Below are positions 14,806 through 44,664 of a DNA stretch of 64,000 nucleotides, one piece after another. Each line of letters opens with the position of its first letter. The first letter of the stretch is position 1. Source of the DNA: Mytilus trossulus (taxonomy: Eukaryota). A program made the translations under genes and the position numbers. The stretch is from the NCBI RefSeq assembly GCF_036588685.1, contig NC_086377.1, forward strand, positions 47,430,001 through 47,494,000, read 5' to 3'. Under the pieces are notes generated by a model, which had not been told where the DNA came from, did not search any database, and saw nothing but the letters and a program-made list of their open reading frames with translations.

Positions 14806-15251
14806 GTATGAAATGTTATTGGAAATATTTCCCTTGAAAACTACAAACACAATTTACATACTATCTTTTGAATTTTTCTCAACCAAACCATTGAAAGTAA
14901 GGTAATCCTGTGCATTCTATGTTCTCAATCAGAAATCATTTTCACTGTTAACTTTTTCGGTCAAAACAGTTGACGTGTTTTGTGCAATTTATTTATGTGT
15001 GTGTCTAACAACATTTTATCATTATACATGTTAGCGGCAATAAGTGAAATTAGGCATTAAGCTTAAATCCTAGGCAATAAGATAACGCCTAGGCATTAAG
15101 TTATTGCCTGAAATTTTCAGGCATTAAGCTTATTTCCTGAAATCTGATGATGATTATTCATCCTATTGCCGAACATAATTTTAGGCAATAAGTAAATTCT
15201 GGAATTTATGCCTATTGGGTGATTTATTATTGATATAAAGGCTTTTCTTAA

Positions 15252-16607
15252 GGTCAAGTTACAATAAATGGGCTATGTCTTAGATTTCAGTAAAATTTGG
15301 CAAACAGCTCTGGCTCGATGAACCTCAACTGAAAATCGAAATAATAATGCATTTATCTCTAATATAATATGAAATATTACTGATTGAATCCTTACAAAAT
15401 GGATGAACATTTGTATAGAAAGCACATAAAATCGGCGAAAACCCTTCTAAAATTTATCTTAAAATCGCCAAATCTCTAATTCTACTCCATAGATTTTTCT
15501 TAAAAAACTATATGTTGTTGATACATAAAGGAGTAGGTCCAGTAAGACCCCTTTTCGGCCCCAAAATATGGCAGTTTTACAAAAACTTTTAGGTATCTAT
15601 TGGATAGTCGAATGGTTCTGCTACATACATATGGGCTGTTTTTGACAATACAATGCACATATATTGGGTACTAGCACCAATAAATCATGCTAAATTACTG
15701 AAATCTTCACAATTCAAGCATTTTAGTGAAATTTTAGACGGTTTCCGTGTAAAACGAAAGTGGCCGCATTAGTGTTCATCCAAAATATTGAAATGGAAGT
15801 TGTATTTGATGATAATACATAACATATATAAAGATATAAAGATTGAGGATGAACACGGATGCGGCCACTTTCGTTTAGACAAAAACCATCTATAAAGTGA
15901 CATTTTTTCGCATATTTGAGCTTGAATCGGATCGTTTTTTATGACTAAATAAGTTGAAATCTTTCACATAAATTATTTGAATCATATGAATTAGACACTT
16001 AAGTGTTTAAAAAGTGGTCAAAATCTTTCGTCAGATGAAACTGAAGTTTGAGGCCGAAATCGGTCCTTACCGGACCTACTCCTTTCCGTTAAAATGATGC
16101 AAAATAAAGATAGGGTCACCGACTTCGTTTTTACGGTACACATCATTCAAAGTTGCGTTCTTTGTGAAAAAATCCAACAAAACGTCGAAATAATCGTAAC
16201 GTTATCGCGTTGCAGGCCGTAAAACGTTGTTTTTTGACGTTTTTCACTACCAATAAGGTAACAAATTGATTATTAGAAAAAAAACGAAGTCGGTGACCCT
16301 ATGATTATTTTATATCATTAAAACAGAAATTTATGTGTCAACAATATAAAGTTTTTTAAGAAAAATCTATGGAGTAAAATTAGAGATTTGGCGATTTTAA
16401 GACAAATTTTAGAAGGTTTTTCGCCGATTTTATGTGCTTTCTATACAAATGATCACCCATATTAAGAGAAATCAATCTGCAACTTTTCAGAAAATAAAAG
16501 AGATAAATGTATTATTTTTTCGATTTTCAGTTGTAGTTCAACGAGCCAAGGTTGTATGCAATTTTTTAGCAAAATCTGCGACATAGCCCATTTACTGTTC
16601 CTTGACC
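15252..16607. mobile_element. Kolobok-type long-TIR MITE (TTAA duplication, GG...CC termini)
   Basis: TTAA|GGTCAAGTTACAATAAATGGGCTATGTC ... GACATAGCCCATTTACTGTTCCTTGACC|TTAA. The arms are inverted over several hundred bp. Confidence 0.8.
15530..16082. mobile_element. Spy-type (PHIS) MITE inserted between AAA and TTT with no target duplication
   Basis: AAA|GGAGTAGGTCCAGTAAGACC ... GGTCCTTACCGGACCTACTCC|TTT. The opposite arm of the host MITE shows the empty site ACACATAAA-TTTCTG. Confidence 0.8.
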
Positions 16608-17221
16608 TTAAATATATTTCTAATATCACATGTATAAATAAACGTTCATTTGACAGATCTTCAAAATGAAGTATATTTAGTAATTTTAACAATTAAAAAG
16701 CAGAATTCACTCATACTTATTGACAGTTTTTGTGATATTAGAAGATATTAAAAAGATTTAAAAAAGTGATTGTATCCAATCACAAAAGGGGGAGATTCTA
16801 TAGAATAATAATTATAATTATTATTTTAAAATTTGTACACTTCACTAATCGAGCTAGTTTGAACTGTTCAAAAGTAGACAAAATTAAAATATGATTTTTT
16901 TTCCATTTTTTTTTATTGGATAAGTAAATTTTCCTAGTTAACAGTTCTTAAATTTGTGATAACAAAATAACTAAAAATTTTATCAAGTTTTCATATTTTA
17001 AAATTGTGATTTGATGCTTTTTTAATAAGAAATACATATTGAATTTATGATTTTATTTCCGACGTGCGACTGCTCGATGAGAAATTCTTCCCTGTATTTT
17101 TTTTTTAACCGAGTGTATAGTTTGCCGGCCACTATGGTCGTGAGACCCCCTTAGGCCGCCCGCGTCTTACGTGCGGCTTACTGATGAAAAATTCCCACCC
17201 GTACTTTTGTTGACAGTATAA

Positions 17222-17447
17222 GCAACACGACGGGTGCTGCATGTGGAGCAGGATCTGCTTACCCTTTTGGAGCACCTGAGATCACCCCTAGTTTTTGGTG
17301 GGGTTCGTGTTGTTTATTCTTTAGTTTTCTATGTTGTGTCATGTCTACTATTGTTTTTCTGTTTGTCTTTTTCGTTTTTAGCCATGGCATCGTCAGTTTG
17401 TTTTAGATTTACGAGTTTGACTGTCCCTTTGGTATCTTTCGTCCCTC
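17222..17447 (+). repeat. Abundant interspersed repeat (non-LTR 3'-end type); further copies at ~22745-22935 and ~41813-42033
   Basis: CGACGGGTG...GAGCAGGATCTGCTTACCCTT...GAGCACCTGAGATCACCCC is shared among the three loci. Confidence 0.7.
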
Positions 17448-19329
17448 TTTTGTCTCATTGGCAATCATATTTGGAATGAAACTGGACCCTGTAGTTTTGC
17501 ATCGGTATTTTTTTCCTGCTCAAAATATGTTAATTGCAGTAATGAAATAATAGTTTTTTGAAGTACTCAGTATTTAAATGAAAGATGCACAATTATATAT
17601 TTGGTTCTAATTATTTACAATTAGTTTGTTCAATTCTAATATAAGACGTAGTTATATTTTTTTACTTTAGTTTTGTTTCAAAGGGTAAATATATTTTTAT
17701 AAAATCAAAATTATTTACTAAATTTAAAACTAATAATTATTTTTTCATTTGCTATTTTCTTTAACGTCAACAATTTGGACAGCGGTTATGACATCATAGC
17801 TAAGATAATCCTAAGATAGTTTCAATGTGCATGCTGAGTCATGTTGTAAGTCGGTCCTACCTTCATCCTAATTTCTGTCCTAAGAATATTTTATAGGACC
17901 GATTTTAGGACAGTTTCAATAAACAGGCCCCAGTTCTCATAATGTTATTATGTAACCAATATATTTTTATTCAGATGAATTATGTCTTTTATTTCCTCGA
18001 ATTTATACTTTAGGCATTAAGCTTAATGCCTGAACCCATTTTTCAGGATTTTAGCTTAAATCCTAGGATTTAAGACTAATGCCTAACATCATTTAGGCAT
18101 TAAACTTACTGCCTAGGCGTTAGCTTATTGCCTAGGATTTAAACGTAATGCCTAATTTCACTTATTGCCGCTAACATATACATTATAACTCTCATTGGTT
18201 TACTTTTTCATCTATATTATAAATGAAAACTCTTTATACGTGTAGAAATGAACATTTTGAACCTACATCAATTTAAATTTGAGTGGGTTTTTACTTGTTC
18301 TGTTTTCACCACTGTCTGTGTCTTAGATAGATTGGCACTTACAAGTACAAGGGAGCTACAACCCATTGGTCAGATGTTCAACTTATATGTATGCGTCCGT
18401 TACTACGTACAAATATAAAACAATGTATAATATATCGCCAAATGCCTAACATCTGTATTATAATGTTTATAGATGTATGATTCTCTCATTTGACATCAGG
18501 AATGTAAACCTACCATAAATCGACGAGTATATGCCCAACGAAAGGGATCCACGTCAATGAATAAGCATACAAAATAGTTGTTTCGTGGAAATCAACTTTC
18601 TGCTTTTGGTCGGGTCGTTGACTTTCTGACACATTCGCCGTCTCCGTTGTGTACTCTACATAAGCATTATGTTTTTATATAGATGCGAATCTAGACTGTG
18701 AACCTCGGGAGCCTATATACAGTGTGATAGGGCGTGTCACATTTAGACTCCACGAATGAGCAGAGTAAGTTTTATGCATCTATCAATTTGTATAGCTTTG
18801 TCATTATAAATAGGGTTATCATGTGTATTCTATGTTATTAATCGGAAACTATTTTCACTGTTAACTCTTTCGGTAGAAACGGTTGAAGTGTTTTGGGCAA
18901 TTTATGTATGTGTGTGTCTAACAACAATTTATCATTATATATATATATATATATATTATAACTCATTTATTGACTTTCATTTATATTATAAATGAAAATA
19001 AATGAACATAATGATCAAGTAATTATTTAAAAGTTGTAACAAAAGTACGTCACACAGTCTTTAGACTGACAAATGAAAACATTAAAAGTAAAAGATTCAA
19101 GAACTTATTGGTAAGTTATTCAACTTTTATACATACATCTATCTAGAATCACGTACACACATCAGACAACGGATGTTTAAGTTCTTATCTATTGATTTCT
19201 CATTAAGTTTGCAAATGAAAATGATTTAACACGTCAAATATACATGAGTGTGTCTTTTTTTCTCTTCGTTGTAATCATTGATTTGATTGTATTCATTGAT
19301 TTAATTGTATTCAAATAATTGTTATCATT

Positions 19330-34905: not shown

Positions 34906-36867
34906 TATTAAATTATAATCCTGGTACCTTTGATAACTGTTTAGTATTGAACATAGGAATTTAAACCCACATGACACAGGTAGATTGAAAATAGCTTGTC
35001 GTTGCTAAATAATGTAACATGAGGCTTTGAAAATACTACATACGTGTAAAAGAATCAGAGGATTTATAAATAAAAGTGGCTTTCAACCTCTCAAAATCTC
35101 TACATGATAAGCAGAAAAAAGTGAAATCACAAAAATACTGAACACAGAGGAAAATCAATTAGGAATGTCCATAATCACATGGCAAAATCAAATAACTAAA
35201 CGCTTAAAAAACGAATGGATAATAACTGTCATATTCCTGACTTGGTACAGGCATTTTCAAATGTAGATAATCGGGATTAAACCTGGTTCTAAAGCGCTAA
35301 CCCTCTCACTTTAATGACAGTCTCGTCAAATTCCGTTATATTTACATAGTGCGTTAAATAAACAGTCACAATTAATAAAGTAATCAAAATATGGGTACAT
35401 CAGTCATCATCGTATAATAATTTTAAAAGGGGACAATTTAACCGAACACAAAAACATCTTCTATCTACGAACACATAAATTGATTTGAGTGTCTGACGTC
35501 AGAAAATTTTAAACGTTTGTCGTTCAATGTGCATACAAACAGTTTTAAAATTTACATAGGCAATGTAAGCATACAGGGTTAAAAAATCAAATATATGTAA
35601 GAATAAATTACAGAAATAGACCGATATTAAAACTAGTCAAAAAGTTATAGGTAGAATTTATGAGAACCCAAAAATAGTTAATACCACTACGCGATTGAAT
35701 GATTTTGACGTTTGTGGTTCAACGTATATATGTCGTGTACAAGTTGCAATTTTGTACAGGTTATAAAATGTACAAAAATGTTGTACATGTTATAACTTGT
35801 ATAATGCAAAAATACAAGTTATAACATGTACAAAAGTACCTCATACATGTTATAACCTGTACAAAATATTGCTTAAAAATTGTTTTAACTTGTACAAAAT
35901 TTAATCTTAATGAAGTCAAAAATACATTTAAATTCACCAATGCATAAAGAACAACCATAAATAGGCCAGAACGTGTCTTTTTCTGTAGAGGACAATGTTC
36001 ACAAAATTTCAGAAATAAATGTTTCATGACTTATGCTGGCAAAATATGTTTTTATGTAATTGTATGTTTTATGTGTTCCATCATGTAGCAACAACCACGT
36101 CCGCCAGGTGGCGCTTCCGGTTCTAATTTTGGAATGTCAGTAATGGCGTACTCGCAACCCCTCGCTTCTATTACAGTCTTGTATTGATAAACCTTGACTT
36201 GTATGCTCCGAATGTATGTTTATTTTTATCGACCAATGGATATATTTAGTGTATATATTAAGCTTTGGGGAATTCCATAGCGAAATGTTGAAACACTCGT
36301 TAGGTAAACGTTATCGCATGCATTTACTACTGTTAATTCAAAATATACGCGACCAACAATTCTTTTTCTAAATAGAATTATTATTCATTTAACAACTTCC
36401 ATATTAAAGTTTCAAATATTTTCATGTAAATGTACCGTATTTTTATTTCTTCAGTGGCACCCAAAATTAGGTCAGGAAAGATAACTCCGGACATTCACTA
36501 CCGGAAGTTGATCTACTCGTGTCAAAAACATTGGCAAAACTGTATTGTTTTTCACTTTGTACTCATTATCTAGGACTTGTAAGTGTGTAATTGCAACAAA
36601 TACTGCATTTCTTCATTGAAATAGGACCACAATATATTTGAATGGCTTTAGTCGTCCCAAATTACTTCCAGATAGTCAATATAATCAGTGAAATACCGAT
36701 TTTTGACCAAAAAAAATAATTTTTGTCCAAATTTACTTTTTTATTTAGGCTTTTTCTGGCTAAGTCAGTAAGTGACTTCATCTTTGTTCTAACTCAATTT
36801 CTTACAAATTTTTATTAAATTCTGAATGACACTGTCAGTGCATAATTATATTCTAATGAAAGGGGTT

Positions 36868-37003
36868 AGTCCAAATAATTATGACATCTGGCAAGGCTTT
36901 TTTTCTTCTGGCCAATCTGTGTTGCTCTCCTACGACTGGTCGTAGGAAAGCGACTCAGATAAATAATAAAATAGCCTTGCCAGACGTCATAATTATTTGG
37001 ACA
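36868..37003. mobile_element. Small hairpin MITE
   Basis: GTCCAAATAATTATGACATCTGGCAAGGCT ... AGCCTTGCCAGACGTCATAATTATTTGGAC. Confidence 0.75.
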
Positions 37004-37404
37004 AGGTCCTTACTTCTAAGTTCTAAGAGTAAGACTAGTGCATAATTATATTCTAATCACACTAATCTAATGATAATCCAATGAAGGGGGAACATGGTCC
37101 TTACTAAGTTACTTAGACCTAAGGCTAAGCTCAGTCCCTGTCCAGGACAGGAATATATATATATTAGATTAATTTATAATTCATATTATTATTCATAGTA
37201 CACTCACTACACTGTAGTTTAATTAAATAATTTTACATTAAAAGTTTATAAGTTGTCTTACTTGTAATGTCTTTGAACTATACTAAAGTCTAAACTTAAG
37301 AAACGGCCCATTGATTTCAAATCAAATCCTTTCCCCGCCCCAATAAATATTTAATAGTCATTGCCTTTCTATTGGTTTCAACAGGTTTGGTGGCTATTTG
37401 TTAG

Positions 37405-40400
37405 ATGGACAAATATATTGATAATGATACACAATTTGATTTATTCAATACTGAGCCTGAGGAAGACTCCACACATAACTATATTTTAGAGAATGACAGT
37501 CAGATTGAATTTGATAGTGACTCATATTCTCTCACACAGTACCAGTCACAGTTAGTAAGTACATTACATAAACTATTTTATGGTCCATTCAACAAAGAGG
37601 GGGGGGGGGGGGTGCTGCATTGGCCTTGTCTGTCCGTCTTACTGCCTTTCACAAAATCATGTATAGAGCAACCAATTTTTTTTCTCTGTCAATTTACTTT
37701 ATACCCAATTTATAGTAGATATATCTGGGAAGGGTATAAAAATATATTATTCTCTGTCTAAATGTAGTACACAAAAATGTCCTATATGTCTTTTTTTTAC
37801 AGTTGTCTCCATCAGACAGTGAGGACCATCCTACTGACCATCCTACTGACCATACAGATGAAATCAAAGTTCTGTCTCTAAAAAGAAAATTGCCTGCTGC
37901 TGCATTCAATGTAAATATTATATTTCTGAAATTCATTGATTTAAACCAGTCAATTATTTTTGAAGATATATCTGGGAAGGGCATCACAATATAATTTTCT
38001 GTCTAAATGTAGTACACAAAAATGTCAAATATAAAAATGTTGTGTTTCTCGTTTCTCATGGTTTTTTTTATAGATTAGACCGTTGGTTTTCCTGTTTGAA
38101 TGGTTTTACACTAGTAATTTTGTGGCCCTTTATAACTTGTTGTTCAGTGTGAGCCAAGGCTCAGTGTTGAAGGTTGTACAGTGACCTATAATTGTTTACT
38201 TTTATAAATTGTTATTTGGATGGAGAATTGTCTCATTGGCACTCATACCACATCTTCCTATATCTATATATGTCTTTTTTTCAACAGTTTTCTCTGTCAG
38301 AGAATGACTACAGTGAAGAATTCAGCCCCAATGACTCTGAAAGTACACAGCAAGTTTTGTCACCACTAAAAGGAGAGCTACCTGCTGCAGAAGCATTTTC
38401 ACCATCAATATTAAAGAAAGGTAGATGTACATTTAAATTTCATAAAGCTTGTCAGACTGTTTCCTCTGGGGAGTTTTATACATTCTCCAAATCAGTATAC
38501 ACTGGAGCTGTAGTCACATCTGGAGTTGTAAATGAAAAAGCAACACAAAATCAATAATAGGTGGTAGAATCTTGCTACTGACTTATAACTAAAAATGAAT
38601 GTTCTTGAAAAGAACTCAATAAATGCAGAACTATTGCTAAATAATATAGACGGTTTGTCTACAATACCTGTACACAAATTTACAGTTGAACTTGCTATTA
38701 CGTTATATAATTTTGCAAAAGAAAAGAAAATTGAAATTGGAAGCTGCTTATCACAGTGGATTGCTAAATTATTGAATTTTAATACAAATAACATAAACCT
38801 ACCTGCTTTAATCGCAAAAATTCATAGACATATACAATGTGCAAAAGGAAAGCGAGGAATCAAAAAAGATGAGTTTCTTGCTTCAGTATTTAATATCCCA
38901 ACATGTACAGAACTTCCGGCAACACAAACTTCATGTACGAAAGAAAATATTATATCAAATTTAACCAATGAAATAGATTTAAAGTCTATTCAAATTGTGA
39001 AGACAAATTTAAAATTGAATGTAAAACAAAAATCAATTAAAACTATAAGAAATGATCATAAACTTTTGAAAAGGAAGTATGAACGATTAGTAAAGAAAGA
39101 AAGTGATAAAGGTAAACTTCTGAAATTTGAAAAGAAAGAGGCTGTGGATAGTCAAAGTATTTTAAAAAGACAATTTCAGAAAAAAGATAATGAAGTAAAA
39201 GTTCTACAAAGTAAGCTTGCACGATCAAGAGAACAGAAAGAAAAATATTACAAACTTTATATACAAGCTAATAGATCACATACTCAGTTAAAACAAAGAA
39301 TACAGTCAGATGAAATAAAACTTACCAATTTACAGAAACAAATAGAACAAGATTATGCAAATTTGAATGACATTAAACGTAAATTTCAAGAAAGTGAACA
39401 AAGTTTGCATTATGTGCAAGATCTTTTAAATGATAATTTTGAAATTGAACTATTCGACAAATCATCAAACAAATACACTACAGAAACTGTCAGATGTGTC
39501 ATGAATCTTACTGACTTAAAAGTGCCATCTGAAAAAGTTGGTAAAGTTATAAATGAAGTTTCCAAATTGTATGGTAAAATTCCAAATGCAGTTCCTTCTG
39601 CAACAGCTGTTAACAGAATTGTAGACAGTAAGTTAGCATTATCACACAAACAATTAGACAAAGTACTAGAAGGAAAGGAACATAATACATTATACACAGA
39701 CGAGACTAGAAAGTATGGTAAATGTATACAGACATATGTTTTAACGGACGATACAAAGACATCTTACATTTTAGGATTACGGGAAATGTTTAATAAAAGT
39801 GGGCAATGTACTTTAGAAACATTTAAAGAAATATTAAAGGATATAAACGAACATTGTCATCAATCAGAGAGAAACAAAAATATGCATGCTGGATATCAAA
39901 TATTGGCCAGTATTAGGGATACAATGTCTGACCGGGCATCAACAGAAAAGAATTTTAATAAGTTGTTAGACCAATTTAGAACAGATATTTTACCTGAGGT
40001 TATTGATAACTGGAATGAATTTGATGAAAATCAAAAGACTTTATGCTCAAGGATGAATAATTTTTTTTGTGGCCTCCACTTACTTGTTGGACTTGCAGAC
40101 TCTTGTGAAGAAAGTTAAGAAATTTGAACGATTATTTCTGGATGGCAAAGACATTGGTTCTGCAGAAAAGCCTGAGTTAAAAAGATATCATAGACATGAA
40201 AGCGGTACTTTACGTCTTTTAAGAACAGCATGTAAATCTTTTGCCATTGGAGAAGATGAAAAGAATGGTGTAGCTTCATACTGGAAAACTTATTTAAATG
40301 AAAAGTCTGAAAAGAATCGATTCCTGAGATTTAAACATAACAGGTTCAATCTGGTCTTTGTTCTTGGTAATGCGGTGTACTACCACCATGAGGACATTTC

Positions 40401-41673
40401 AATTTTTTTAGATTCTGTTCATGGCACAAAAAATGATCTTCTCAAGGCTGTTTCATTAGATATAAAGGAGAAACTTTTTCTAGCTGGAGCAAAAGCATTA
40501 GGTTTAATTTCGAAATTTATTACTGGTCCGCTCTGGAGAATTCTTGAAAGTGATATTCACATACTGGATATGAACCATCACTATCAGTCATTAATAGAGT
40601 TTCTTCATAAAGGTGCCACAAATGTAGATGACGTATCTAAATTTGTAATTGGTGAGCATACTCCATTTGACACGTCCGTTGATTTGGAGGACCCACTTTT
40701 TGTACACTTGACTACTGGAAATGAGCCAATTGATGACATTGTCTGTCCTCTTCTCCAAAGTTTATTCCAGACTATGTGTACGCTTCTGAAAAGAATGGTT
40801 GTAGATCACCTTCCTGGGGGTAAGTTCTGGAATCCAACTGAAGGACTCATTAAAGAAAGTAAATCAACTATGACTCATAATAAGCTACCAGAATTTGTGT
40901 TTGGTCAGTTAGATCAACTTTTAAGGTATAGACCAAACTCAACTTTGCTTGCAAACGAAGCCTACCTTTTATATTCACATAACAAAACTGGCCAGTGGTT
41001 AGACAGCTTGAGTGAAGTGGAAAGAAATGTTATGATTGCCAAGTCAAAAAAGGAAGGGGTACAAATAAGGAAAAACTTTCAGCTTAGGTTACTTGAAATT
41101 GAACAGAAACGAAGAGAGGATATGAAAAAAAGACAGGAAGAACTTGAAAAAAAAGAAAGAAATAGGCTTCAAAATGCAGAAAATATAACTAACAATGTAT
41201 GTTATTATGGACTTTGGCAAAGTGGACTTCAAGTTGATGAGGGTTTGGGTAGAATTCCTGTAAATGAACACAGAAAAGCTCTGGAATCCCAATTAAAATT
41301 TCGAAAAAATGTTTTGAAGCAGAAGCATGCAGATAAAAAGATTTTCAATTTTTCAAGGAAAAATGAAAGAGATAAATATGACAAGTTATCGGTAGATGAA
41401 TTGAAGGAAAATGTTCTCACTTTGATTAAAGACACTTTAAAGGAACCTACTACAGAAAGAAACCAACCTAATAGTAATATACCCTTATTTGTTGGAAAGA
41501 AAATTGAACATTTGTTTAGTGATGGTATTAAATATTATGGACATGTTATTTCAGTTGTTCCAGGATTTCCAGACTGGTATAATCTCAAATACCAAGATGA
41601 CGAGGCAATTTATGCGTTCAATTTAGGGAAAGATTATGAGAAGGGGGATGTAAAAATTGTAATATTGCCTTAA
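37405..41673 (+). pseudogene. DDE transposase (hAT/CxxH class) with coiled coil and C-terminal Spin/Ssty Tudor-like domain; small acidic 5' exons, main frames 38595-40118 and 40069-41673, lesions at ~38560-38590 and ~40115
   Basis: TLYTDET (D, 39699), TMSDRA (D, 39930), FCGLH (CxxH), RFN (hAT RW-like) and HNKLPEFVF (E, 40891). C-terminus FVGKKIEHLF...YYGHVI...WYNLKYQDD...IYAFNL-x-x-DYEKGDVKI. Confidence 0.8.
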
Positions 41674-44664
41674 GAAATAAATAGTATCTGTTTGAATCAG
41701 CAATAAATAGTTTCTTAAGACATTTCCTCTTTTGAATTGTGCTAATTTTGAAATAGGACCATTTGAATCAGTGAATCACTTAAATATTGTTCTGATTAGA
41801 CTATTTACTGGATTACGACGGGTGCCACATGTGGAGCATGATCTGCTTACCATTCCGGAGCACCTGAGATCATCCCCCGTTTTTGGTGGGGTGTGTGTTG
41901 CTCAGTCTTAAGTTTTATATGTTGTTTTTTATGTACTATTATATTGTCTGTTTGTTTAATATTATTTCGATAGGGTTGTCAGTTTATTTTCGATTTATGA
42001 GTTTGACTGTTCCTCTGGTATCTTTCACCCCTCTTTTATGTTTATACTTATATGTTACAAAGAGTTTTTAAGAACTTTTCAGACTTGAACCAACAGCAAA
42101 CAGATATTTTTTTTTAAATGTAAGCCAAAAACCCGATTGATTTGTTGCATTGTTTTGATTTTAGGTTGATTGTTTTCAGTTTAATTACTAAAATTCAAAA
42201 ATTAATGTGATGATTCATTACAAATACTACGACAGGATTATTCTTTGATTAAAATCTGTTTTCCTCCATCTTCAATCTGTATACTTTTTTTTTAATGCAA
42301 GTTACCAGGAAATTGCATACACAAATTCCGGTTTCATCGGTCATTTCAAAATCACAATAATTTCTGAATTTGAAATAGACATGTATTTTTGTTCCGAGTA
42401 ATTCCATTTCAATTTCCAATTGCCATAATTTTATAAATCTGGAGAGATTATTTTACTTTGAAGAAGACGAAAGGGTTTTAAATTAAGATAGCACATATCA
42501 TTTCTTGTGACTGAAATGGAATTACTCTGTTTTTTTTTGTCTGAATCTGTTTATTTCCACTTTCTGTGGCAACATTCATGCATAATAAAAGATAAATAGT
42601 TAGATAATATATTTATTTATAAAATATAAATTAGTTTGAAGAGGATACTTAGATTTGTTGAGTGATACAATAAAAATGTACAGGTTTTGGTGAAAAAATC
42701 AAATAGCTTTATATAATTTAAATGTCAATTGTTTTGTAGAAATTTTATGAAATAGAATATTTAATAATTAATATTTTTACATTATTTTTACATTTTTCAT
42801 CTAATTTTTGTCTAAATTCTTGGAAAAAATACTGTTGTTTTATCATTGTGATAATGTCATAGCTATGCAAACTTGATTTTATTATATAAACTTGTATGGT
42901 ATTGTAATACAATGATTTTTTTCTCATTTCAGACCATTTCCGCCAAGGGGGTAACCTTATATGTGACTATTTTTACAACACTTATATTCAACTTACAGTT
43001 AAAATCTTGCCATATTTAGAAAGAGGAAGGCTGATTTAACATTTATAGGTAAGTAAAACAATTTTATTTCTTGTTTTCTGTTTTTAATTAAATAGGGTCA
43101 CTTTTTCTGAATTTTGTAAAAATGTTTGATTTTCAAAGTACATTACCATACCATTAAAAAATAGTCCAGACTGTTTTTCTAAGAGATAGAAAGAAACTGA
43201 CTAGAAATTTGGGCTTAGGACACCTTGTTTAGGGTAGAATACATTGTTTTATATGAGAAAATGATTTAAAAAAAAAAAAAGTGTTGTTGCTACATCATGG
43301 CTTAAATAAGTGTGACACTATTTACTAAAATCTTGCTTTCCTCAATGACAATTACCTTATATACTAGCAACTAAATTCACCCAAAAATTTAAAAATAATG
43401 CCTAATAACTTTGGGTAATACTCCTCCCTCTCGTTTAATAGCACGCAAAGACTAAAACAATTTCTCATATGCTTACTCTGTAAATGCAAGAGAGAGCTGA
43501 AATAGTTTTCATTGGACCACGCTCCATTATCAATCTTTGGATCTACTCATTTTTGGCCTTCCAAATACTTATGTAAATTTATAACTCAATTTTTATTTTA
43601 TAAACTATAAGATCATTACATGAGGCGAATGTCATTTTGATTGTTTTAAATATATATCCTCTTCTTTGAAAGCATTTATTTGTGGCCTTTGAATGTTGTC
43701 TGCTCCATGGGCGGGTTGTTGTTTTTTAGACACATACCCCATTTCCATTCTCAATTTTATTTGTAAACACATCTATCCTGGCTATCCTCTGATGTCTTTT
43801 GGTGTCAACTAGAATGAAAGTGTTTACTAGCCTTCAAAGTGGATACTCACATTTACAATTCACCAAATAAAAATATGTCAATAGATAGTCATAAGAGGAT
43901 CAATAAGAGGATCATAAGACATGTCCTGAGATATATCTTATGACAGGTCTTAGGAATGCTTCCTAATACCGACCCCTGGACATTAACTGTATCAAAAAAG
44001 GACAAAACACACTTACATGAAGGAATAATAAAAATATTATTTAGGTTAATAACATCTGTTGCAATAATAGAAATATATCCTTATTTTTCAATTTTGTACA
44101 AGTTGAAACCATTTTTAAGCAATATTTTGTACAGGTTATAACATGTACGAGGTACTTTTGTACATATGTTATAACTTGTATTTTTGCATTATACAAGTTA
44201 TAACATGCACAATATGTTTGTACATGTTATAACCTGTACAAAATCGCAACTTGTACACGACATATATATTAATTCATAATAGAAATATATCATAATGACA
44301 TATAGTAGACCAATATAATACTGACGGGATCTTTTAAATTACAGTCACGTAATAAGAAGAAAAGAAATACCAAAAGTCGCATATACAAAACAAACCACAA
44401 AAAATGAAAGTCAAGACAAACACATTGACGAGATGTTTCAGTACCGAGCCACGTTTTACATATATAGCTACACTAAGTAACAGTCAAGTATAATCATTTG
44501 GCAAACCGAGGCATTATTCTTGCAGCTGGACTTTTTGGTCCATGCCCTAAAAAATTAGATAGCTTGTTTTCCAGTATTCAAATTTTATTTAAATACTTAG
44601 GCATTAATAAAAATTATATACTTAATCATGAAGTGTGTAATTTTCATTGAAGCTAATATATTTA

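Follow-up and report, generated by a model that had tools for sequence, protein, structure and literature searches.

Whether a cut-and-paste transposon can carry its own reader of histone marks is the question raised by a locus of the mussel Mytilus trossulus. The window, i.e., the whole stretch of DNA that was analysed, is 64,000 nucleotides (nt) long and corresponds to the chromosome piece C5:47430001-47494000. It contains an N-free element of about 8.5 kb at positions 35731-44262, whose transposase gene ends in a single domain of the Spin/Ssty family, to which the Spindlin proteins also belong. The explanation held here with moderate confidence is that a transposase with the fold of Hermes uses this Spin barrel to read a methyl mark, which would tether the enzyme and bias its insertion. 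Unless another location is given, positions are those of the window; genome searches were run on the 1.3 Gb genome of M. trossulus.

The element is a terminal inverted repeat (TIR) transposon of the cut-and-paste type, recently active, and the window holds a now frameshifted autonomous copy. Inverted repeats pair 35725-35913 with 44078-44268 (103 nt at 95% and 88 nt at 91% complementary). Comparison of 34 ends from 20 copies shows that the element proper starts with TGTCG at 35731 and finishes with CGACA at 44262, which are exactly the ends claimed in an earlier note on this DNA. The ends, the flanks and the parts found in shorter copies are:

35727-35730, no strand: left TATA, most likely the 4-bp target-site duplication (flanks of 34 ends)
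35731-35913, plus strand: left TIR of about 185 nt, starting with TGTCG, with 9 copies of TGTACANGTTATAAC
44078-44262, minus strand: right TIR of about 185 nt, with 8 copies of the 15-nt motif TGTACANGTTATAAC
44263-44266, no strand: right TATA, target-site duplication (flanks of 34 ends)
35731-36085, plus strand: left part retained in non-autonomous derivatives (comparison with short copies)
43293-44262, plus strand: right part retained in non-autonomous derivatives (comparison with short copies)

The 15-nt motif has 17 matches in the window against 1.24 expected; all 17 lie within the two TIRs, where they are laid out as overlapping palindromic pairs. The repeats are likely candidates for transposase binding sites. 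A first look at the genome with the left TIR gave 1,262 candidates, and the 40 that were scored are all 94-100% identical. Hundreds of shorter copies (1.2-1.4 kb) are built from two pieces of the window element, its left 355 bp and its right ~970 bp, and their composition marks them as its non-autonomous deletion derivatives.

TATA adjoins the element at all 34 ends (one reads TACA). Outward of it stands a purine in 34 of 34 cases and then T in 32 of 34, mirrored on both flanks (consensus T-R-TATA), and the preferred target appears to be the palindrome TRTATAYA. A left TGTATA is paired with a right TATACA, TATA alone being common to both flanks, and such flank pairs rule out a duplication of 6 bp or 8 bp. 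The alternative of a 2-bp TA duplication is disfavoured by one uninterrupted paralogous site, the single case found in an all-against-all search of the flanks, which keeps all four bases in register. The target duplication is most likely the 4-bp TATA within TRTATAYA.

The element carries a single gene for a protein of ~1,025 amino acids (aa) with, in order, a helical domain, a coiled coil, a DDE core and ~230 aa that end in the Spin barrel. In the window this gene is split into two open reading frames (ORFs), which overlap in different frames and were each searched as a query of their own:

38595-40118, plus strand: ORF1 (507 aa), with an N-terminal helical domain, a long coiled coil and the first part of the RNase H-like core
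39699-39701 (D369), 39930-39932 (D446) and 40068-40079 (C492xxH495), plus strand: catalytic residues of ORF1 (family alignment and model of a relative)
40116-40117, plus strand: frameshift, TA (2 bp) missing in comparison with a 99.6% identical copy on the same chromosome
40069-41673, plus strand: ORF2 (534 aa), with an all-alpha insertion domain, long C-terminal helices and the Spin domain
40339 (NRFN) and 40891-40893 (catalytic E275, in PEFVFGQLD), plus strand: motifs of ORF2 (family alignment)

In the 99.6% identical twin copy, located at C5:21.96 Mb, two extra bases, TA, follow window position 40116 and the frame stays open across the ORF1/ORF2 junction; a separate loss of 1 bp breaks the twin near window position 41360, upstream of the Spin region. 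TA is present at the junction in contigs of two public runs (X1 and X2) as well. The twin and the run contigs, together with relatives whose ORFs of 998-1,252 aa are unbroken, indicate that the ancestor had a single ORF of ~1,025 aa and that both near-identical copies are now broken. The window copy is considered a pseudogene because ORF1 is ended early by the 2-bp deletion after 40116. A programmed frameshift or an intron at the junction was rejected, as the twin and the run contigs simply have two extra bases. The earlier note had placed the Spin region in frame with the catalytic half of the transposase; this applies to the C-terminal half with the insertion domain and the catalytic E, whereas both D residues and CxxH are located in ORF1. 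A third copy of the element's 5' internal part (C39:2638095-2638765, 100% identical) was found on a small scaffold and is regarded as a partial copy or haplotig fragment because it is absent from the protein and Spin search matches.

The domain itself is located as follows:

41485-41664, plus strand: single Spin/Ssty (Spindlin Tudor-like) domain (Pfam, Spindlin alignment, structure searches)
41515 (F), 41533 (Y), 41590 (Y) and 41611 (Y), plus strand: cage equivalents, with the D184 equivalent at 41632 (HMMER alignment)

The last 60 aa had been assigned to Spin/Ssty by eye, with the cage mapped to F/Y/Y/Y and D173 and D184 kept, and the profile searches agree on each of these points. The last 74 aa (41449-41670) match the Pfam family Spin-Ssty (PF02513) with 34.8 bits (E 1.4e-8; gathering cut-off 25), the whole of ORF2 scores 30.7 bits, and 18 of 29 family members match the same model, the best with E 2.6e-12. 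Searched against the Spindlin-1 chains of the PDB, the window peptide gave E 3.2e-20, with 29.9 bits for repeat 2, 26.1 for repeat 3 and 16.1 for repeat 1. In the HMMER alignment F141/W151/Y170/Y177 of Spindlin-1 correspond to F/Y/Y/Y, H139 to H and Y179 to F, while D173, D184 and D189 are each represented by D. The methyl-lysine pocket of Spindlin repeat 2 is formed by H139, F141, W151, Y170, Y177, Y179 and D184 (PMC8213585); the window reads H, F, Y, Y, Y, F and D at these seven positions.

An AlphaFold2 model of the window peptide, built from an alignment of 41 sequences, reached a predicted local distance difference test score (pLDDT) of 88.9. The best 42 ranks of a Foldseek search with this model are all Spindlins; the 24 Spindlin entries listed have template modelling (TM) scores of 0.69-0.76 and a root-mean-square deviation (rmsd) of ~2 Å over 62-65 residues, at 28-34% identity. 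A structure search independent of Foldseek, over 48,161 representative chains, placed Spindlin-4 first (Z 9.7) as the sole chain with Z of at least 8, followed by the histone-binding Tudor domains of RDM15, PHF20L1, BAHCC1, TDRD3 and PHF19. Superposition on Spindlin-1 domain 2, by which the earlier note had proposed to check its claim, was also successful: the domain of the nearest intact relative, P0001, fits Spindlin-1 residues 125-194 (repeat 2) with Z 10.4 and an rmsd of 1.6 Å over 64 aa. According to these models, the domain is predicted to be a Tudor-like five-strand barrel with the pocket of Spindlin repeat 2. On the levels of sequence and structure, the reading given in the earlier note is thus borne out.

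The fusion is old and under selection, and it occurs widely among marine invertebrates; the named carriers are bivalves and a sea urchin. With ORF2 as query, 81 places were found in the genome; some of them contain uninterrupted frames, which measure 959-1,252 aa at 27-47% identity. The nearest intact relative, P0001 (998 aa, 47% identical), is encoded at L053:1388-4384 on the minus strand (C14, ~77.70 Mb) and corresponds to LOC134697357. All eight PF02513 matches that a six-frame search detected in the genome fall in places of this transposase family (domains split by introns may escape such a search). A full-length protein search yielded 41 relatives, 20 of them with a precomputed Spin-Ssty match, and included Mytilus coruscus and Pinctada imbricata; the Clytia relative among the 41 is without such a match. 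The family relatives are annotated as 'uncharacterized'. The Spin domain is found at the C-terminus of uninterrupted ORFs of 998-1,082 aa whose cores are 35-47% identical.

A profile of the domain was compared with 1.84 billion cluster representatives and matched 683 proteins at E ≤0.001, 192 of them at ≤1e-10. Among 147 new best-match representatives, 65 have a transposase body directly upstream of the domain, one of them from the sea urchin Diadema setosum, and ~16 are multi-repeat proteins. The combined protein set contains at least 100 transposase-linked clusters, 26 multi-repeat proteins and 64 proteins too short to classify. Transposase-linked domains end at a median of 1 residue from the C-terminus, and a second domain is present in 1 of 100. 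Aromatic residues occupy the four cage columns in 82, 97, 98 and 92 of 99 transposase-linked domains, respectively, and all four at once in 73; D184 is kept in 93. Spindlin repeat 3 has R or K at two of the four columns. When the tree of the catalytic core is rooted at its midpoint, Spin-like domains are present in both halves, a pattern compatible with early acquisition of the domain followed by loss or replacement. Full-text literature searches (Repbase and Dfam entries not covered) found no description of a transposase with a Spin/Ssty domain.

Several relatives have other or additional modules at their ends. The end modules at L012:2908-3126 and L019:2902-3117 align with the Spin domain and have weak Agenet, Spin or Tudor-knot matches. 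Those at L013:2881-3315, L023:970-1401 and L016:2941-3414 share the motifs QYIAVAY, WYPGQI and FKWP and have weak chromo-like matches (E 0.0055-0.07); comparison of this L013/L016-subfamily module with the Spin alignment by hhalign gave a probability of 1.7%, i.e., no relation, and an atlas search with it gave DUF7869 leads only. Reader modules may have been swapped within the transposase family. The top match of the domain profile is P0042, a metagenomic protein of 1,194 aa with 13 Spin-like stretches, from a 98-kb contig. P0039 (Clytia hemisphaerica) and P0036 are relatives of cnidarian type with 1,219-1,243 aa and weak Agenet or Spin matches; both seem to start a second Tudor-like repeat past the first.

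The core of the transposase was placed by structure, using P0001. Its AlphaFold2 model has a mean pLDDT of 80.6, mostly >90 in the core. Foldseek ranked Hermes first for the core (E 7.5e-6), then ISCth4, RAG1, P element and Transib. VIA-align superposed P0001 302-769 on Hermes 135-609 with Z 17.5 and an rmsd of 3.6 Å over 341 aa, the runners-up being ISCth4 (Z 11.2) and P element (Z 9.4). In the model D343 is located on strand 1, D414 ends strand 4, C460xxH463 follows strand 5, and E732 begins the helix after an all-alpha insertion. Across the family alignment D, D, CxxH and E vary little or not at all, and the conserved D, D and E are placed where a DDE enzyme needs them. The model describes a predicted DDE core of RNase H-like fold that has a CxxH motif and is interrupted by a large all-alpha domain; Hermes is its closest solved relative.

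The label 'hAT-like', used in the earlier note, is upheld by fold and motifs but not by the hallmarks of canonical hAT transposases, which are absent. NRFN and S/P-E-R/F-x-F presumably occupy the places of hAT RWNS and SERxFS, an equivalence seen by eye and taken as a lead only. In the core of 29 aligned members no Pfam match was detected, and no hAT, P, MULE or THAP model matched at E up to 10. A core-only profile searched against all PDB sequences retrieved neither Hermes nor any other solved transposase. The hAT dimerisation domain (PF05699) did not match any of the 29 members; it matches at least 150 other places in the genome. No BED zinc finger was found in Pfam searches of the window ORFs and the family members, and the N-terminus of the P0001 model is helical, without a Cys/His cluster. 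The lineage is divergent, and profile libraries do not recognise its core. The models argue for a Hermes-fold, hAT-like lineage outside canonical hAT, linked to hAT by fold and short motifs only.

A mechanism can be proposed on this basis. The transposase would bind palindromic TGTACA-N-GTTATAAC units in the long TIRs and cut and paste the element into TATA within TRTATAYA, generating the 4-bp duplication; this part is probably correct. The Spin barrel, for its part, has a fair likelihood of binding lysine or arginine in methylated form, the most plausible ligand being a histone tail of the H3K4me3 type (histone H3 trimethylated at lysine 4). In view of the conserved aromatic cage, a methyl-lysine or methyl-arginine ligand is likely, and an H3K4me3-like one appears most plausible, since the domain has the pocket of Spindlin repeat 2. 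As Hermes-type enzymes work in multimeric form, several barrels might together tether the complex to marked nucleosomes and bias the landing site; this role in target choice, proposed by analogy, is tentative.

Several points weigh against this explanation. The strict preference for TATA means that DNA sequence, and not chromatin alone, sets the insertion point. The window copy and its twin are both frameshifted, and the run contigs, which are from runs of unknown type and cover most of the transposase ORF at a depth of ~5, leave the Spin region uncovered (no contig over 41528-41724). One cage aromatic is lacking in 26 of 99 domains, and in one clade the Y177 column is occupied by L. Spindlin packs three repeats together, and a lone repeat may behave differently. 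Finally, no sequence-level link to hAT was found, and Kolobok or Dada, which are without solved structures, may be closer kin.

The domain could instead read chromatin for regulation and not for target choice, by recruiting or retaining the transposase or host co-activators at the element's own chromatin, by limiting activity to the chromatin state of germline or embryo, or by countering silencing. This is unlikely, but it gains from the strict DNA motif, which already dictates the insertion point and leaves less for a reader to do, and from Spindlin-1 itself, described as a transcriptional co-activator that reads H3K4me3. Against it stands that the intrinsic reader domains known from integrases act on target choice.

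Rather improbable is a barrel without a histone ligand. Its target would then be nucleic acid, a docking partner of the host or a non-histone protein carrying methyl groups, or the barrel would act as an oligomerisation or stability module. The Tudor/SH3-like barrels with Z 5-6 in the structure search do include DNA-, RNA- and protein-binding domains, the third repeat of Spindlin reportedly binds the docking protein SPINDOC (bioRxiv preprint, PDB titles), and the incomplete cages in 26 of 99 domains point the same way. Conservation, however, falls exactly on the repeat-2 methyl-lysine pocket (H139, F141, W151, Y170, Y177, D184), and the non-binding repeat 3 of Spindlin has lost its cage residues.

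There is little probability that Spin-bearing proteins are mainly domesticated host genes and the window element is a side branch in which the domain is idle during transposition. P0001, the only intact Spin-bearing ORF in the genome, lacks inverted repeats within 6-7 kb on either side, and M. coruscus has a counterpart that is 96% identical to it; P0001 may have been domesticated or have lost its mobility. The window copy, on the other hand, lies between TIRs that are intact and flanked by TATA duplications, and hundreds of young derivatives stem from its ends. The genome also contains many decayed Spin-bearing copies, as is typical of a transposon family. That the fusion is a chance local event or a read-through artefact, as the frameshift of the window copy might suggest, is refuted by other copies keeping the domain, in uninterrupted fused ORFs at 35-47% core identity and in at least 100 clusters. 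The earlier note had named copies lacking the domain as a finding that would speak against it.

Further features were observed within the element and elsewhere in the window, one of which is a nested repeat:

38041-38279, no strand: nested, very abundant repeat of ~230 bp (5,936 first-look genome candidates; contig depth >100,000)

This repeat is not part of the transposon's own machinery. A second stretch of very abundant repeat is present in the element at 41725-42118; contig depths at both repeats are in the range of 10^4-10^5. The 5' non-coding part of the element contains, at 36860-37011, a 44-nt inverted repeat pair (86% complementary, 64 nt spacing) at which contig joints vary, probably a small nested hairpin element. 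Contigs of the two runs join 37910 to 38288 and omit 377 nt with GT..AG ends. The adjoining stretches 37803-37910 and 38288-38420 are open frames in phase with each other, the 377 nt are retained in all three genomic copies, and the omitted segment (37911-38287) looks like a phase-0 intron. The joined contig has a depth of ~90 versus ~5 over the transposase ORF and also holds letters foreign to the element; it may derive from a spliced transcript sharing these exons or from unassembled DNA copies. The termini of a separate element at 15023-18182 are TGTTAGCGGC and the reverse complement of this sequence, and TATACA flanks the element at either end (6-bp duplication). It resembles the element described here in its TG...CA ends and TA-rich palindromic target; its TIR sequence is unrelated.

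The direction in which the domain travelled can be discussed only with reserve. It is doubtful, though worth stating, that Spin/Ssty is essentially transposon-borne outside the vertebrates and that vertebrate Spindlin/Ssty arose from a captured and triplicated transposase reader. The named three-repeat proteins among the best profile matches are all vertebrate Spindlins. This, together with the location of all eight mussel matches in the family and the count of 65 in 147 representatives with a transposase body versus ~16 with several repeats, leaves a transposon origin open. Conversely, the domain could possibly have come to the transposon from a host gene that is ancient and has since disappeared from invertebrates. 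A FastTree phylogeny of 214 domain sequences gave support of 0.0-0.75 at the relevant nodes, the domain being short, and no direction of transfer.

Chromatin sensing by cut-and-paste transposons is mostly explained by host tethering factors. To our knowledge, intrinsic readers are well known in integrases, as chromodomains, and rare in DDE transposases of the hAT-like kind. Reader-guided integration is directly testable here, as the cage is intact, the TATA target is strict and the genome, assembled to chromosome level, contains hundreds of young insertions. Through the fusion, insertion of the transposon may be coupled to chromatin marks. Should the reader indeed guide insertion, the domain would be a possible natural template for chromatin-directed transposon vectors. 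The family also accounts for many models of an 'uncharacterized protein' with a lone Spin/Ssty domain in invertebrate annotations, and it raises the testable question of where the vertebrate Spindlin family came from.

Among known systems, Spindlin-1, -3 and -4 share with the mussel domain the Pfam family, 30-34% identity, an rmsd of ~2 Å over 62-65 residues and the same seven pocket positions, at which W151 is conservatively replaced by Y and Y179 by F. The difference is one of context: the host proteins have ~260 aa with three packed repeats, whereas in the mussel element one repeat ends a transposase of ~1,000 aa. With Hermes and hAT the element has in common an RNase H-like DDE core split by an all-alpha insertion and CxxH past strand 5. 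In hAT the duplication is 8 bp, or 5-6 bp in some groups. The element differs in its 4-bp TATA duplication, in TIRs of ~185 nt that are not short and start with TGTCG, in an additional coiled coil and ~230 aa added at the C-terminus, and in being without a BED finger. The SPIN ('Space Invaders') elements of tetrapods, in which the name is an acronym, are similar in name and in their hAT relation; we do not know of any that carries a Spin/Ssty domain, and the shared name may mislead database searches.

The P element and THAP9 are characterized by a THAP domain, a GTP-binding insertion domain and a 7-8-bp duplication; a placement of the present element there was rejected in the absence of a Tnp_P or THAP match in Pfam and with a structural Z of 9.4 versus 17.5 for Hermes. 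Kolobok elements, which are common in molluscs, have a C/DxxH motif and a 4-bp TA-rich duplication, namely TTAA, 5'-RR...YY-3' termini and, in nearly all lineages, a zinc finger between C/DxxH and E (PMC9587614). The element resembles them in its C/DxxH-type motif and its 4-bp TA-rich duplication; assignment to Kolobok was rejected, as it has TATA, TG...CA termini and no conserved Cys/His cluster between CxxH and E.

GingerRoot elements are described as integrase-related DNA transposons with chromodomains (PMC6839031). They and the integrases of chromoviruses (Ty3/gypsy) resemble the mussel element in design, i.e., a recombinase with its own C-terminal methyl-lysine reader of the Royal family, for which the same tethering logic is proposed. 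The differences are a retroviral-type integrase versus a Hermes-like transposase, a chromodomain versus Spin/Ssty, and marks that probably differ as well. Mobile-element recombinases with a reader of their own are therefore already known; apparently new here is a transposase-borne Spin/Ssty reader in a divergent lineage with a predicted Hermes fold.

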